Assembly: GCF_000143415.4 (NCBI RefSeq)
Contig: NW_003314430.1
Span: 62,001-126,000, forward strand
Source: Selaginella moellendorffii
Lineage: Eukaryota > Plantae > Lycopodiophyta
DNA: 64,000 bases
Direction of reading: 5' to 3'
A program made the translations under genes and the position numbers. The notes under the pieces were generated by a model. It was given only the letters and a program-made list of their open reading frames with translations. It ran no database searches and was not told where the DNA came from. Shown here piece after piece: positions 5,321 through 28,317 of the stretch (position 1 is the stretch's first letter; each line of letters begins with the position of its first letter).

Positions 5321-7553
5321 AACTATTCACAAACGTTTGCAAACCATCATTCTGAAGCTTATAAGAACTAAAAAATGGCGACATATTCACTCCAACTTGG
5401 AGCTAAAGCAGCTCAAAGTGCCTCTTAAGAGTGCGTGAAGCCATATTGATAAAAGGAATTTTTGTTCTTGTCAGAGATTGAATCCAGGACAAGTTGGAAT
5501 ATTCATTATTATATTTACTCCAAATTATTTTGTTTCATCACTTTGCTTATGAATTTGGCAATGACTTAATCTATATTTGATTCCATTTGTTTAGGAATTA
5601 GAAGTTATTTTGTGAATTTAACCAGATCAAGACTATTATCTTAGGTGGGGAAAGTAGGACAATTTCCTTCTTTGCATGTAAGGGGTTATTCCATGGCAAA
5701 TCTTCATATCTAAAACCAATAGTAGTTATTTATTAATTCAGTTGATTAAAGCTTATAAATTATAAATAAAACATTAATTTAAATGAATAATAATAGTTAA
5801 CTGGTAGAATTTCCCAAATTATCTAAACCATATTCTAAATATATCCAGTATCACCCATAGGTTTGCTTAAGCAAACCAAAAATACATCTTGTATTTCATG
5901 ACAGCTTAACATTTGGGTGTTATGTTATAGCAAACAATAATAAATTAAAAGTCATAAACACTAATTAGAGTATAAAAAATTAACTTTGCATTTAGAAGCA
6001 TCATCCTAAGTCTCAAGACTTTAACATTCAGATATTACATAAGACTAAATAAGTTCTATCTTTATCTTTTTGTATTTTAATTTTTTATCATTAATGCACA
6101 TTCATATACTTAAAATTCGAAATACTCAAGTAATGCCAAACTTATCCTCACTCATGATCTTGATATAAACCTTCTTAGAGATTGAAGAACTAGAATCACT
6201 TTTTTTTTTTCTCATTTTTCGTATATTTGTTTATGTTTAGCTCAAGAGTTACTACAGAAAAACATAAAATCTAAAAAGCAAATCAAACAATAATCAACCA
6301 CTTTTTCCCTCTTTTCTTTTTTTTTTCTTTTATTCTTTCTCTTACTTTCTTATACAATATAGATACACCAAAACATAAGCGTTTTCATTAGTGACCACTA
6401 TGAAAGAGGAGGTATTATAAAACAAAATGAATTTTTGGTAAAAGATTTTAAGAAAAACAAAAAGAAACAACAAAGGCAACAAAATAAAAAAAATCTTGAA
6501 GATTATGAAAAATTTTAACAAAAAAATAACTCAATCCTATCAAAGATGGCAAAAATTTACTCCACAAACCTAAAGCAGTTACAACTAATTCAACAAGAAG
6601 TGAACTAAAACTCAAGATTTTAACAATTAAGAAAAATTTTTGATACTTAAATTTTTTTTGACAAATTTAAGAAAGATTTATTGACACTAAAGAAAGACTT
6701 CAATAAATGTAAAAGATTGATGAAACAACACAGCTGTCTTTTCAGAGATTAAAGATGTACAAGATATGAAAAGTGTCTATTTTGTGGCTTTTAAATTATG
6801 CTAAACTCTACATCAAATGCTACCTAAATAAACAATATAGTTATTGTATTATAAAAAAGATTGTTATAAAAATTAAAGACAAAAAATGAAAAAGTCAACA
6901 AAAAGGAAAACTATAAATAATGGGAATATGTGCAAAGAAAATCATATTTGGTTTGATCATTTTTCAAGAGTTTAAAGCTTGACTTAGATTTATTGAGGTC
7001 ATATTTTCTTTCACACTTTCATTAACTTTTTATTTATACACAAAAAAAGTTTTTTATACCAATCAAATTAGTCTCAATAACAAGCTTTCTCAAGTGCTAG
7101 CTACAAATTAAGATTAAAATCATCAGACCATAAATTTACCAACTCATTATTAGACATAGAAACTTTGGAATACACAATGATATTACTTCAACTATTATAA
7201 GAACCAATAAATGTCACATTTCTAATAACAACATTTATTCAAGTTCATAATTACACATATCAAGCATATAATGCACATAAATGAAACCAGAGATTATACA
7301 CTATACCATTAACTTACACTAACAAGAAATCTTAAGATTAAAAAACTTGTAAAGAATAAACAACCCCAACTTTATTTTCCACCATATTATAAAGAACCAA
7401 CTCACCGAAGCGTTGCAAATTAAAAGATCCCCCGAAATCATAATCAAAATGATAAAAAATTCATTGGATAAGATTAAGTTTGAAATTGAGTCCAAGAGTT
7501 CAAGACCAAATCCATTATCGAGACTGAAACCAAGTCCGAGTACTAATACAAAT

Positions 7554-8596
7554 TGTGGGGTGAAACCCTAAAGCAATCGTCTTTAGGGGGCTTATAGAGG
7601 TTCCAAAAGCATAATAGGATAGTGAGGTTAAGGACTCAATCTTAAAGGAATTGTTTAGTGGTACTTCTAAATTAAGTTAGGGTTAAGATTGAGGGTTAAC
7701 AACCTCGGGTGGGAGTGAATACAACCTTGAGGAGTCCTAAAGAGGCTTTTTAAGGAAATGCTTAAAAGCAATTCCCACTCTTGGAAGGGAAAATTAACTA
7801 TGGTGCTTTTGGCTCAAGTGGAGTGGTACACCACTTGAGTACCATAAGGGTCATTGGTCCTTGCCTTTTTCCAAGGGATTAAGCCTTCTATTTGGGATGG
7901 AGGTGGGGAGTTATTAGACCATTTGGCCACCTTTAGTATCCTGAACTAATAGATGCACGCAGGGCTTGGGATTTAGAGAGTCCCATTAACAAGCTTTGCA
8001 TATCATGGGATGTTATAAACCTAGAAATTTAGTGTGTTTAGTTGCTTATGCATATGGGGAGTGTGACTAAACCTTAAGTATAGTCCAACTTAGAAAGGGG
8101 CAAGGGAAAAAGGGGGGATTATGAGAGAATTTTGGAACTTGTGAAGAGTTAATTAATTTTTTGTTGCTCATGCAATAAATAATTGAACCTCAGTAGAACC
8201 AAGGTATATTATGATTAATGGGAACCTTGGCAAGGGAATTTAGCTAAGGTGTGGTGTGGTGGCCGCTAGTAACTTGGGTTGGGTATTGGGTTTTCTAGGG
8301 GATGCCAATAGACTAGTGCCTGTCGGATCTGGCGAGTGGACGAGAAACGTCCCTGCCAGGGGGCAGTGTGGGCTGTTGTTCCTGGTGGGGAGAGACGGGG
8401 CAGTGTGGGCGGCTGGGGTGCACACCGCCCGAAAGGGCCAAAGTAAAGGTGGTTAGATAAACAAAGTAAACTAGCAAACTAATCAAGGAAATAGCATTTA
8501 AGAATTCTAATGCACTTTAGAGTTTAACCATAGTAAATAAGAGTATCAATTCTATGTCAATTATCATATCCACAAACATAAGAATAAGCTTATACA
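7554..8596 (+). mobile_element. Probable solo LTR (~1043 bp)
   Basis: Starts TGT, ends ACA, flanked by CAAAT on both sides (7549-7553, 8597-8601); composition shifts to G-rich at 7554; 7580-7625 resembles the reverse complement of 11455-11505. Confidence 0.5.
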
Positions 8597-10485
8597 CAAA
8601 TTTGAAGAGCTCAATCTTAATCTTAAGATTTAATTTGGAGCAATTAAGTTCTAATTGTAGTCATTTAGATTGATGAAAAAGATACTAACTCTTGAGTTTA
8701 TAAACAATTTCAATATGTCGATGTTAATGCAACAACACCAATTCAACTCATCATTGAAATTCCCACAACCATACTATACAACCAATCCCAAAAAAAGTTT
8801 GAGAAATCATCAAAGCTTCACAATAACAAACTCAAATAATATAAGACCATAAAGAACAATAATGCAATAAAATCTAAAAAATAAGATATAAAAATTGAAG
8901 AAATCAAAACCATGATATTTATCATTTTTAAATGTAAGATATAAAAAGACTTATGAGGACACTCAAAAATCTGCCTATCAAGATTCAAGAAAGAATCTTC
9001 AACTTAGTTCATAATTAAAAAAATCAAGAAAACCATAAACCAATATACTATGGATCAATATTCACACTAAGAAATTTATAGGAAAATAAGATAAAATAAA
9101 GCTTTACATTGGAGACTCATTATTGAGTTTTTCTAGATCTCCCACATCTACTTAAATCAAAAGCACATTTGCCAAAAAATAAAAATAATATATACAAAAT
9201 AAAGTCAATTCAATCGACAAGAGACTATTAATCTTTATACTTTAAAAAATCAAGAAAATCATTAGACTTGAATTCTTTTAAGGATACATCACACCTATTG
9301 GTGTGGCCATATACAAGTTAACTAATAAAGAAATACAAAATGAAACTTGGGCAAAATAACAATAGAGACACTCACAAATACTTAAACTCTTAACGAAATT
9401 AATTTGCAAAAACTACAAGAATAAAAATTTTGAAAACCTATTTCAACAACAATATCGAGGACAAAAACACTTCAAATACAACCACTATTCATCTCAGATG
9501 TTTTAAATATCACTATTGACTGAAAAACACAAATGTTTATAATGTGGATGCGAAATATTGACACAACACAATTAAAAGTATGCCTTGAATACATTTATAA
9601 CAAGGACTTGCAAAAAGAGTAACTGTAATATGCATTCTTGTTTGATTCTAAAGTTGGTAAACAACAACCTTATTGAAAACTGATCAAATTTATGAAGTTG
9701 AGTATGATATAGCAACAAAAACACCAATATACAAGATTGTGTTATTCTATATTACACAATTTTATAACTATATAACATTTACTCTAGAAGAATAAATATA
9801 CCAAGGACTAAAAGACAAAGTCAAGAAAACAAATTCAAGACATTGAATTCAAGAAAGAAAATACAAGATTTTAATAGAATATTGAATATATACATATAAA
9901 CTAACCCAATCAAGATACAAGAATGAAATTAACGACAACAAAAATGAGAAGATAATAGAGGACTTCATAAAACAAAAAAATACTCAAACTCAAGAAGAAA
10001 TCTTTGAGAATATCATTAACAACTACAACAAAATGAATCAAATAATATAAGTAAGAGGAGAAAGTGGGCCACTGAACAAAGAAATGGTGCCAAACTCCTA
10101 AACATAGAGCTAAGGAGTGATGGAACCGGACCACGAAGCAACTCTCGAGCATATAGCCCAAGGCGCTAAGGGACAGGAGCCCAAAGCGACTTGGAACAGT
10201 CTTAAAGCAACTTGCATCCCATTACCATGACCAATATGCAAAATGGAGCCAAACGGAGTTTAGCACTATTTCGACATACCAATGGCCTAACACAAGGACA
10301 TGGGTACTCCATTAGCTAATATGGAGCTAGTATGGAATGGAACTTGGGATTAGACCCGAGTTGGACATAGAATAAGGACAAGCACGCAAGCGAGAGTTAA
10401 ATTATACCTCAAGTTGGTCAAACATGCCTAACCTACACACTATCCATACTATACATTTATAGCCCCCTATAATGCGCCCCCCCCC

Positions 10486-10519: not shown

Positions 10520-10849
10520 TTGAGGAACATAGTATTAGGAGTTAGTCTTTGGGACAAACTCGAAAGTTATTAAATATTGAATGTCCTAAGATTGTAAATT
10601 TGGACATGGGACAAACACCATTGTGTTTAGGATTTTACATTCCGTAGATGTGCCAAATAAGCAAATCTAGACACTTTTCATAAATAGTATTTGGGACCGA
10701 AATGAAACTAACACAAAAGGCATGATAGCGAAAGTGTTTGGTAAACACAATAAGTTATCATCTAGCAATATTGAGGGACCAAGTTTAATATCACGGGGGG
10801 TTTTGATATTAGCAAATGCAAGCCAATGACACAAGTTTCTCAAACTAGG

Positions 10850-11043
10850 TGTAAGCAACTAAAGAGAACAACTTGAAAGACAATCCATGAGGTTCAAATA
10901 TATAGGGAAAGGGCCCATGAACAAAAGTGCACCCCTTTTTTTAATCGGTTAAAAGTCTTGGGATATTTAAGGTTAAATGTCCTTGGGTTTGAATAGTACT
11001 GGGTTGGGTGACCTCTTGGGAAGTCCAAACTCATGAACTTACA
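10850..11043 (+). mobile_element. 194-bp solo LTR with a 5S rRNA-derived segment (Cassandra TRIM-like)
   Basis: Termini TGTAAG...CTTACA; 10971-11026 resembles the 5S A-box/IE/C-box region (GTTAAGCGTGCTTGGGCGAGAGTAGTACTAGGATGGGTGACCTCCTGGGAAGTCC); absent from the paralogous arm at ~11860. Confidence 0.8.
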
Positions 11044-11091
11044 CCAAACCGAGTATGCTCAACAAGAAACATATAGAGTTCCTACTTTATG

Positions 11092-25363: not shown

Positions 25364-26047
25364 ATGGCTCATGGAAATCTCTCCTCGCTGCCGCCACTGC
25401 TGCTTATTCTCATTTCTTCCTTGGTGATCTTCTCATCCCGCGCTGCCGATCCCGATCCAGCGCAGGATTATTGCGTCGCAAACGTCGAGCTCCCGCTGCG
25501 AGTGAATGGCTTCACTTGCAAGCCCGAGGTCACTCCGCTCGATTTCGTCTCCTATCTCCTGCGAGAGCCCCCGAATCCCACCGCCCTGGAGAACAATCGA
25601 CTGGGTTCCATCGTCACGCAGGTGAACGTCCAGAGTTTCCCGGGGCTCCACACCCAGGGCCTCTCGATCCAACGCTTCACGTACGCCCCCGGCGGCGTGA
25701 TTCCTCCCCACGTCCATCCCCGGTCCTCGGAGCTGCTCTACGTCCTCCAGGGAACGGTCGTGGCGGGGTTTGTGACCACGGACAACCGGCTGTTCCAGGC
25801 GACGCTGGAGCCCGGCGACCTCTTCATCTATCCCAGAGCTCTCATCCACTTCTCGGTGAACACGGGCGAGACGCCGGCGCTGGCGATCGCGAGCTTCAAC
25901 AGCGCCAATCCGGGCACGGCGCTGCTGCCCAACGCGCTCTTCGCGTCCGTGCCCGTGCTCCCGGCCGCGGTGCTCGCCAAGACGTTTGCGTTGAGCCAGA
26001 GGGTCATGGAGAGCTTACGGCTCGCATTGAGGAGCATTCTAACCTAG
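25364..26047 (+). CDS. Germin-like protein (cupin)
   Basis: Signal peptide, DPDPAQDYCVA, NGFTCK, FPGLHTQGLS, PPHVHPRSSE, PRALIHF, FNSANPG. Confidence 0.95.
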   Translation: MAHGNLSSLPPLLLILISSLVIFSSRAADPDPAQDYCVANVELPLRVNGFTCKPEVTPLDFVSYLLREPPNPTALENNRLGSIVTQVNVQSFPGLHTQGLSIQRFTYAPGGVIPPHVHPRSSELLYVLQGTVVAGFVTTDNRLFQATLEPGDLFIYPRALIHFSVNTGETPALAIASFNSANPGTALLPNALFASVPVLPAAVLAKTFALSQRVMESLRLALRSILT

Positions 26048-26229: not shown

Positions 26230-28265
26230 AGGGAAATCAGTGTGATCAGGGAATATCTATCCTCATCAGAGGACGTCAAAGATGACATAGTCCACATCGA
26301 AATGACGAACAACGAGGGAGCGCTGAAGGGCACTGTTCAAGTCAGTCGCTGACAAGGCGTTTGAGGTGCTTGAGGCGGCAAGGACGCGTGAGCGTGAGCG
26401 TGAGGCGGAGGCGGCAGCAATAATCAGTAAGTTCCTCTTCTTGCTCGTGTATTTCGGTCTCATGTCGATTCTTCCGCGTGAGCAAAGCTCGTACTTGGAC
26501 TTGGAAAATGCGCATCAGAATGATGGGAGGATTGTGACAGTCCAGCACGCCATCTCTGGGAGCACGAAGCGATACTCAGTGATGCTGAAGTCGGGCCGGT
26601 TGCTGCAAGGAACGTCCGAAAGCTCCTCACGAACCTACGGGCCGACATCGAGCGCCACGCTAACTGCTGGCAAATCCGTCAGTGCGTTCGGGAGCCGGAT
26701 GACTCCTGCAATGATCTCGTCTACCAGGATGCAGCACGACTGGTAGTCGGCCACTGTACCACGCAAAATGTTGACATGCACAACTTCACAAAGTGCTGCC
26801 GGTTCCAAAGGAACAGACTAGCAAGATCAGCGGCAGGCGACAGCACCTTACCTGACTTCGCTATTGGCATCGTCCAGCCGGCCATGGTGGTATCGACTAA
26901 TGCTTACGAGTGGTGCGACATCTACGTGGAGTTCAAAAACGACGAATCCAAGCTTGCTGAGGGGTGTGGCCAGGTTCTGGATAGGGCAGAGAAGCGCTGG
27001 AAAGATGCTTGCGCCAAGAAGAAGGTGGCGTTGGGTGGTGTGTCTACAGGCAAAGATCTATTACCTATGGTCGTATTCACAGATGCAATTGTCGGCTCTC
27101 ATGTTGTCAAAGGTGTCAGGTGGAGCTTGGAAAGTGATGGAGCCGCAGGTGTGACACCAGGAGTGGTGCATGTGGATAGTTTGGCGCTGCCGGAGCTCCT
27201 CTTCCAGATCTTCTGTGCCTTGCACTTTTCCAGCAGATGTTTCACCATGAAACCAGGAGCTGGCATTCCAAAGCTGGAGCCTTCCCACTCATACAAGGAG
27301 AAGTATGTCGTGCGGTCTGATTCAGGCGAGATATGGGAGCTAGAGCTCGTCCACACGTACATGGACTTCCTCTTCCGCGGGGGCTGCTATTTGGTTCGGT
27401 TGGATGGCAGCAAGCAGCAAGTGGTGCTCAAGCGAGGCCCATGCAGTCGGTCAAGTGTGCAGCTGAAGGATTTGGTCTTCCAATTGAGCTCTTCAGCCAG
27501 GTTGAGAATGAGATCCGCGTTCGGGAGGTTCTGGCTGCCAGTGGATGCAAGATCAGGATCCCCGAGATTCTGTAGTCAGGCACGGCTTTACAGCCGTTTG
27601 GCTGGAGAAACTGCCCGATCGTGCTCATGAATTACGTTGGTGAATCGCTACACAGCAAGACGCTTCCTATCCGGGACGCCGCCAAGATGGGAGCTAGCCT
27701 GCCAATCCCAAAGTCGAGAAGGTGGAGCCGCTCCAAACCAACTCCTTGCTCGCGGTAAGCAACGTTCCTGGAGCTGATGTCTCTATGGATTATCTCCCGC
27801 TTGTGCAGATCCAGCACCGTCTCCACCGTGATTTCCTCGGACAATGGTGGTAGCGTGGGAAGCAGCTCTGTCAAGGACCTGGAGTTTGGCTCCATGAACT
27901 CGGTGTTGGGCAACAGCGTTGACGCTTCAGCGGATCTGGAGGGCATTCTGTATACGATGGTAAAGGTGGCCGGGATGGATCTGCCGTGGTCGACTGCTGC
28001 GCAGGAGGAGGACGAGGACTTGGTGGTTACCATCCGGCGCCAGGTGTTGGACCAGGGCTTCCTTGCGAAGCTCAAGGAGCCCCTCTTCAATCAGTTGCAA
28101 CAGGCAGTGTTCAACGTCCGCCCTGATGTTCCTTCACCATATGATCATTTCCATTGTCTAGCCTCTAAATCTCCCGGCTCGCCCCTGCTCGCCAAGACGT
28201 TTGCATCGAGGCAGAGGGTCATGGAGAGCTTGCTGCTTGCATTGAGGAGCATTCTAGTAGAGTAG
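26230..28265 (+). pseudogene. Crinkler(CR)-like REase + protein kinase gene with a premature stop and internal inversion; 3' end fused to a duplicated germin tail
   Basis: PDFAI..DIYVEFK..GCGQV (REase); VVLKRG|VENEIRV; TAG at 27573-27575; HRDISSRN..LLDFG on the minus strand within 27702-27826; DLEGILYTM..LPW on plus. Confidence 0.75.
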
Positions 28266-28317
28266 TGACCAATCGATCCTATCCATTCATGATGCTGTTT
28301 GAATTTAAATTTGAAAG
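28171..28317 (+). repeat. Direct duplicate of the germin 3' end and UTR (25958-26142)
   Basis: tgctcgccaagacgtttgc..cagagggtcatggagagctt..gcattgaggagcattcta..tttgaatttaaatttgaaag present in both. Confidence 0.92.

Follow-up and report, generated by a model that had tools for sequence, protein, structure and literature searches.

A 123-bp in-place inversion on one haplotype of a decayed nuclease-like/kinase gene in Selaginella moellendorffii

Within a decayed gene of Selaginella moellendorffii, a 123-bp tract that encodes the catalytic loop and DFG motif of a protein-kinase-like domain lies reversed in place on one haplotype relative to the other. The tract belongs to a stretch of 64,000 nucleotides, hereafter the window (GL377734.1:62001-126000, assembly GCA_000143415.2), in which an initial annotation, made from the letters alone, had drawn attention to it. 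We regard it as highly probable that the inversion is real, derived and neutral. To judge from the alignments, it would be a young, haplotype-specific and heterozygous variant in a pseudogene of the plant nuclear genome. As to its origin, the best overall explanation, which we hold with moderate confidence, is that a template switch during DNA synthesis inverted the tract in place, on this haplotype only, in a gene that was already dead.

The inverted tract and its unflipped counterpart

The unflipped arrangement is found on scaffold GL377649.1 (our loci L005, L006 and L007), which we read as the other haplotype of the region because its gene order matches that of the window (germin, kinase, patatin, legumain, RING, exostosin, Di19) and because its SNP divergence, 1.51% in the 10.4-kb stretch right of the tract, fits the similarity of about 98.5% that a passage of PMC7801247, citing the genome paper, gives for the haplotypes of this assembly. 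The aligned span corresponds to window positions 20029-48114 (28 kb). In BLASTN, window 27703-27825 is the in-place reverse complement of L005 11141-11263 (123 bp, 95.1% identity, E ~1e-50), a match far beyond chance. The flanks are collinear to the base, with window 27702 pairing with L005 11140 and window 27826 with L005 11264, and both junctions are flush: 0 bp were lost, 0 bp were gained and there are 0 bp of microhomology, the last because the bases beside the breakpoints permit no other placement of the tract. The initial annotation had described a precise inversion of 125 bp (27702-27826), whose reversal restores the reading frame, with 1 bp of inverted homology at its breakpoints. The alignment to L005 upholds the precision, trims the extent to 123 bp (27703-27825, i.e. 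41 codons), the frame being kept at either length, and removes the base of homology. This is the single piece of opposite-strand alignment between the haplotypes in 28 kb, and a scan of the same span for reverse-complement words (k=12) found no second in-place flip. Three clusters of SNPs (26582-26603, 28104-28118 and 28289-28296) had been considered as tiny inversions and are actually offset indels between the haplotypes.

The consequence for the reading frame is simple. The plus-strand frame runs to 27701 as ..MNYVGESLHSKTLPIRDAAKMGASL, turns into unrelated residues that end at a TAA within the tract (Table 1), and picks up again at 27828. The minus strand from 27826 to 27701 reads VETVLDLHKREIIHRDISSRNVAYREQGVGLERLHLLDFGIG, a kinase catalytic core in which HRD (27787-27779), the downstream N (27766-27764) and DFG (27715-27707) follow one another in order; the VVLK lysine and the alphaC glutamate region lie upstream on the plus strand. 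Searched on its own, the 42-residue minus-strand piece matches positions 111-144 of the Pfam Pkinase profile (23.7 bits, E 3.6e-5), and the plus-strand pieces on both sides of the tract gave no Pfam match. These results bear out the earlier reading, according to which the catalytic core is coded on the minus strand only and the forward frame hits a stop in the present orientation before resuming with VISSDNGG.

Table 1. Coordinates of the pseudogene and of the features within it, in window positions
Feature	Position	Strand	Basis or remark
Pseudogene of a Selaginella-restricted family	26462..28265	+	tblastn of P0002, P0124 and P0123 onto the window; ORFs
Shared 1-bp deletion after 26548	site 26543..26554	+	Alignment of window, L005, L002, L001 and L004
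PD ... D-x-x-x-E-x-K motif (LPDFAIG ... CDIYVEFK)	26851..26937	+	Translation; family alignment
C run with window-specific 1-bp deletion	27437..27439	+	3 C in the window vs 4 C in the allele
In-frame TAG, window-specific	27573..27575	+	TGG in the allele; polarised as window-derived
Left flank, kinase hinge and alphaD-alphaE (..CPIVLMNYVGESLHSKTLPIRDAAKMGASL)	27576..27702	+	Collinear with the allele up to 27702
Inverted tract, catalytic loop and DFG	27703..27825	-	BLASTN vs L005 11263-11141; Pfam Pkinase 111-144
TAA met by the plus frame inside the tract, present orientation	27756..27758	+	
Right flank, kinase C-lobe and tail (VISSDNGG .. DLEGILYTM .. LPW ..)	27826..28265	+	Collinear with the allele from 27826
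Germin 3'-end copy	28171..28256	+	88% identical to 25958-26041; gives the last residues of the open frame

The flip is the derived state and arose on the window haplotype, since the other haplotype, the paralogues and the order of the kinase domain are all unflipped. First, the gene model of the unflipped allele (P0124, SELMODRAFT_426568, on GL377649.1) reads through the junction positions unbroken (..GASLLETVLELHKRGIIHRNISPRNVAYREQGVGLERFHLLDFGIAAISSDNGG..). Its match to Pfam Pkinase (PF00069) forms one stretch, residues 208-326 against profile positions 92-204, that spans both junction positions, with a score of 31.0 bits (E 2.3e-7), slightly below the gathering threshold of 31.7 bits. Second, P0124 is collinear (..GASLLETV..HR.IS..DF..) with P0126, a further member of the family, and with P0001 and P0123, the annotated proteins of a paralogous locus represented by L001 and L004. 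Third, the paralogues L001 and L004 are themselves collinear with L005 across the tract. The pieces of the window copy were searched apart and never re-inverted or joined in silico, the natural unflipped allele being used instead. This allele provides what the initial annotation had expected of the unflipped order, a kinase core in frame and continuous across both junctions, and the comparison with the other allele and with paralogues that it had proposed finds both collinear and unflipped.

A third copy of the gene, the badly decayed L002, was considered as a possible carrier of the same flip and is ambiguous, as its flanks are AT-rich unrelated DNA and neither junction can be matched. At L002:8358-8932, a fragment of the N-lobe lies on the plus strand and a fragment of the HRD region (IIDKDITPRNIAYHE) on the minus strand, with AT-rich unrelated DNA between them.

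A lineage-restricted gene and its decay on both haplotypes

The pseudogene consists, in this order, of a short N-terminal part, a restriction-endonuclease-like region and a protein-kinase-like domain, and it stops at TAG TGA (28263-28268). The kinase remnant carries no annotated gene in the gene list of the GenBank record that covers it (L003, the locus of the neighbouring patatin gene, GL377734.1:80546-101825, which is window 18546-39825 at 100% identity), and no paralogue of it was found elsewhere inside the 64-kb window. The best-conserved block of the family, LPDF..CDIYVEFKNDESKLAEGCGQVLDRAEK, with the invariant alignment columns C131, D132, V135 and E136, looks like a PD-(D/E)xK nuclease motif. 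It is this motif that designates the putative nuclease, the nuclease-like region having no Pfam match; nor have the N-terminal 60 residues. A phmmer search of window 26524-27435, which covers the nuclease-like region and the kinase N-lobe, against 1.84 billion representatives returned five matches, every one in S. moellendorffii; the upstream ORF, used in a word search, likewise matched proteins of this species only. At the sensitivity of phmmer, the nuclease-kinase family would thus seem to be restricted to this lineage. All five relatives are short or patchwork gene models.

The family has two distant look-alikes. One is the fungal FunK1 (PF17667) or Spok type of nuclease-kinase. An HRDIS.RN catalytic loop, weak matches to PF17667 (E 0.0014-0.006) and look-alikes proposed by a language model point in this direction, but every score of the S. 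moellendorffii gene lies under the curated thresholds, and the protein atlas gave weak look-alikes only (FunK1-type kinases, the Spok N-terminal family and a rotifer DUF), whose scores of 0.86-0.90 are to be taken as leads. The other is the Crinkler-type module exemplified by CRN8, in which a PD..ExK nuclease-like motif is likewise followed by a protein-kinase-like domain. Unlike Crinkler modules, the S. moellendorffii gene has no identified header domain and no Pfam nuclease match; and while Crinkler effectors are secreted, this gene is a pseudogene of the host. CR-like proteins are present in land plants too (review in PMC5289972). The phmmer search among 1.84 billion representatives, with its matches in S. 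moellendorffii only, found no homology to the CR proteins of other eukaryotes, and the Crinkler likeness may accordingly be described as one of architecture.

The gene was broken before the flip arose. A 1-bp deletion after 26548, found in both haplotypes and in none of the three paralogous copies (L002, L001 and L004), puts the N-terminal part out of frame with the remainder. Being common to both haplotypes, it predates their split, so that the gene was dead before the flip and had no function left for the flip to destroy. Decay then went on separately on each side. Three lesions are private to the window haplotype: 1) a 1-bp deletion in a run of C, which puts the kinase N-lobe (..VVLKRGP) and the alphaC region in different frames, at a point that L002 crosses in one frame; 2) an in-frame TAG shortly before the tract; and 3) the flip. 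The allele has its own set. It shows an 11-bp deletion and a 1-bp insertion, it lacks much of the kinase N-lobe through a deletion of 188 bp (window 27085-27272) and a further 40 bp close to the C-terminus, and it reads HRN instead of HRD. In the catalytic loop it is the flipped copy that retains HRD, the unflipped allele (L005:11141-11263) having HRN. The initial annotation had rightly reported the TAG as disrupting the gene; both the C-run deletion and the shared deletion after 26548 had escaped it.

An 86-bp copy of a germin 3' end (25958-26041 and 28171-28256) brackets the nuclease-kinase unit on both haplotypes, and the latter seems to have been inserted into or beside the end of the germin gene. 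Further away, two stretches of the window (6001-10000 and 48001-50000) have about 29-30% G+C, against about 50% elsewhere in it. Repeats in L001, L002 and L004 match window 7498-8247 and 10849-11044, for which reason the low-G+C stretches are probably transposon remnants.

Origin of the inversion

The process that we favour would be an error made once during DNA synthesis, in which the growing strand jumps to the complementary strand at one breakpoint, copies 123 bases backwards on it, and returns at the other breakpoint. Such an event could take the route of an inter-strand template switch, as in the 'inversion only' case of the four-point model, or that of break-induced replication, and copying of low fidelity would leave extra substitutions in the tract. 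The main rival is a cut-and-flip, in which two double-strand breaks 123 bp apart are followed by religation of the fragment in reverse by non-homologous end joining, blunt and without loss. If the flip is taken as real, a template switch appears the likelier of the two and end joining a credible second; with all readings considered together, the cut-and-flip remains a serious possibility of lesser probability. Copying is thus favoured over rejoining only weakly, and the lean comes from two observations, an excess of derived substitutions in the tract and hairpin duplications in a paralogue.

The first observation concerns divergence. The tract differs between the haplotypes by 4.9%, against 1.5-3% around it. 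When polarised with L001 and L004 as outgroups, five of its six differences turn out to be changes of the flipped haplotype and the sixth a change of the allele, and the flanks contain 13 window-derived changes in 1153 bp. The five changes compare with about 1.4 expected (Fisher p=0.024, Poisson p=0.014), in a post-hoc test on small counts. Religation of an existing fragment leaves this excess unexplained. The possibility that the extra substitutions had been copied from a sampled paralogue was rejected, as they are not shared with L001, L004, L002 or P0126.

The second observation comes from the paralogous locus. L001, and also L004, contains two inverted duplications of hairpin form, the first at 9926-9968/9982-10024 (arms of 43 nt, loop of 13 nt) and the second at 10348-10385/10395-10432 (arms of 38 nt, loop of 9 nt). 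Each consists of a coding stretch with its own reverse complement before or after it; both are absent from the window and from its allele, and the annotated proteins P0001 and P0123 translate directly across the inverted arms. Such duplications argue for copying because only copying can make them, and a cut-and-flip cannot. The same locus also has an alphaC-coding segment inverted in place over about 66 bp (L001:10773-10840, L004:14653-14717, corresponding to window 27480-27556). This inversion is independent of the flip in the window. Its junctions bear a 5-bp inverted duplication (CCAAT..ATTGG) and two filler bases, which are also what filled-in staggered cuts would be expected to leave, and they therefore speak for a cut-and-flip as well. 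We observed CAAT/ATTG at the breakpoint or centre of three inversion or fold-back events (GGGATTG|CC at window 27825|27826, CCAAT|TG and GCAATTGC at L001 ~10770 and ~10390), a coincidence that is probably due to chance.

The junctions of the window flip do not separate the two processes. Symmetrical switch points that lack microhomology are not specifically predicted by template switching, and a blunt cut-and-flip fits them equally: they are flush, no base was lost or gained, and no inverted repeats flank the tract. Against the cut-and-flip, it is uncommon in plant end joining for four natural DNA ends to be joined without the loss of any base.

The definite microinversions between human and chimpanzee are 17-33 nt long, and every one of them lies between inverted repeats that are perfect or nearly so (Potapova, Kondrashov, Mirkin 2022, PMC8755829). 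They resemble the flip in being the precise in-place reverse complement of a short tract, seen between near-identical sequences; the flip differs from them by its 123 bp and by having neither flanking repeat nor microhomology. Its length and its lack of flanking repeats count against a template switch, as does the absence of hairpin potential in the ancestral sequence. Among mutations caused by short-range template switches, the four-point model includes a case in which a fragment is inverted and nothing else changes, and inter-strand switching is the favoured form (Loytynoja and Goldman 2017, PMC5453318). The hairpin duplications of the paralogue are classic products of this kind. The mutations described there typically concern tens of bases and create or perfect inverted repeats, whereas the S. 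moellendorffii flip would be a pure inversion with symmetrical switch points, its mechanism being inferred.

An assembly or cloning artefact, such that the plant itself lacks the flip and only a clone or a low-coverage Sanger consensus shows it, is unlikely. The genome project reportedly had few-fold Sanger coverage per haplotype, which leaves some room for such an error, and eight ORF variants, of which five cross one junction or both, were looked up in the records without an exact match. However, a flip of 123 bp fits inside single Sanger reads and cannot result from reads that were joined wrongly. Six sites distinguish the tract from its counterpart on the other haplotype, and it is therefore not a misplaced piece of that haplotype; a mis-join with the latter was rejected for the same reason, the tract bearing its own SNPs. 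Both junctions are, moreover, exact. For an artefact at the level of the clone, we retain a very small probability.

It is less likely still that selection favoured the flip for inactivating a harmful kinase or toxin gene, an idea close to the initial annotation's suggestion of a toxic kinase that had been disarmed. All the copies that we examined are damaged, by differing lesions, and the architecture may recall the toxic nuclease-kinase modules of Crinkler type, both of which would suit this account. Yet the frameshift common to both haplotypes is older than the flip, and the two other lesions of the flipped haplotype, together with the independent degradation of the allele, are what neutrality would lead one to expect. 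Furthermore, the cell death caused by CRN8 requires the nuclease domain and not kinase activity, according to Zhang et al. 2016 as reviewed in PMC5289972, and this weakens the idea of a toxic kinase further. Neutral decay of an already dead gene would be the simplest reading, with nothing for the flip to disarm.

A programmed switch, inverted by a site-specific recombinase, would suit a conservative inversion that is exactly in frame, and is scarcely credible: the ends have no inverted-repeat core sites, the flipped haplotype carries other lesions that break the gene, and a tract so diverged from its allele has not been flipping back and forth with it. No inverted repeats were found at or across the breakpoints, whether in the window or in the ancestral arrangement, and this excludes both the recombinase and a route mediated by inverted repeats; the hairpin potential of the ancestral sequence is unremarkable (z +1.1). 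The initial annotation's preference for an accident over a recombinase switch agrees with these results and with the apparent status of the flip as a derived, heterozygous variant in a pseudogene.

Significance of a repeat-free microinversion

The flip is an ordinary one-off error of replication or repair, and it is not what killed the gene. By itself it is of little weight, as a lone neutral structural variant of a gene that is dead and restricted to one lineage. What gives it value is its cleanness as a specimen: the assembly also contains the ancestral allele, paralogues fix the polarity, the junctions are exact to the base, and no repeats flank it. At 123 bp it is much longer than the human-chimpanzee cases of 17-33 nt (PMC8755829). 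It also illustrates that reading-frame logic alone is able to detect small inversions.

The flip is not the only event of its kind in this family. About 1.8 kb of gene, over three loci, contains the 123-bp flip, the inversion of about 66 bp, both hairpin duplications and a further inverted fragment. One may speculate that scarless small inversions and fold-back duplications are far commoner in S. moellendorffii, or in the nuclease-kinase family, than in other genomes that have been studied. We consider this doubtful, and the 28-kb comparison of haplotypes, with its one flip, does not show a high local background rate. If the rate were nevertheless high, the assembly, with both haplotypes in it, would offer ready examples from which to learn how repeat-free inversions form. 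Taken together with the sister events of the paralogue, the flip could in any case help to decide whether microinversions that arise without repeats stem from template switching or from end joining.
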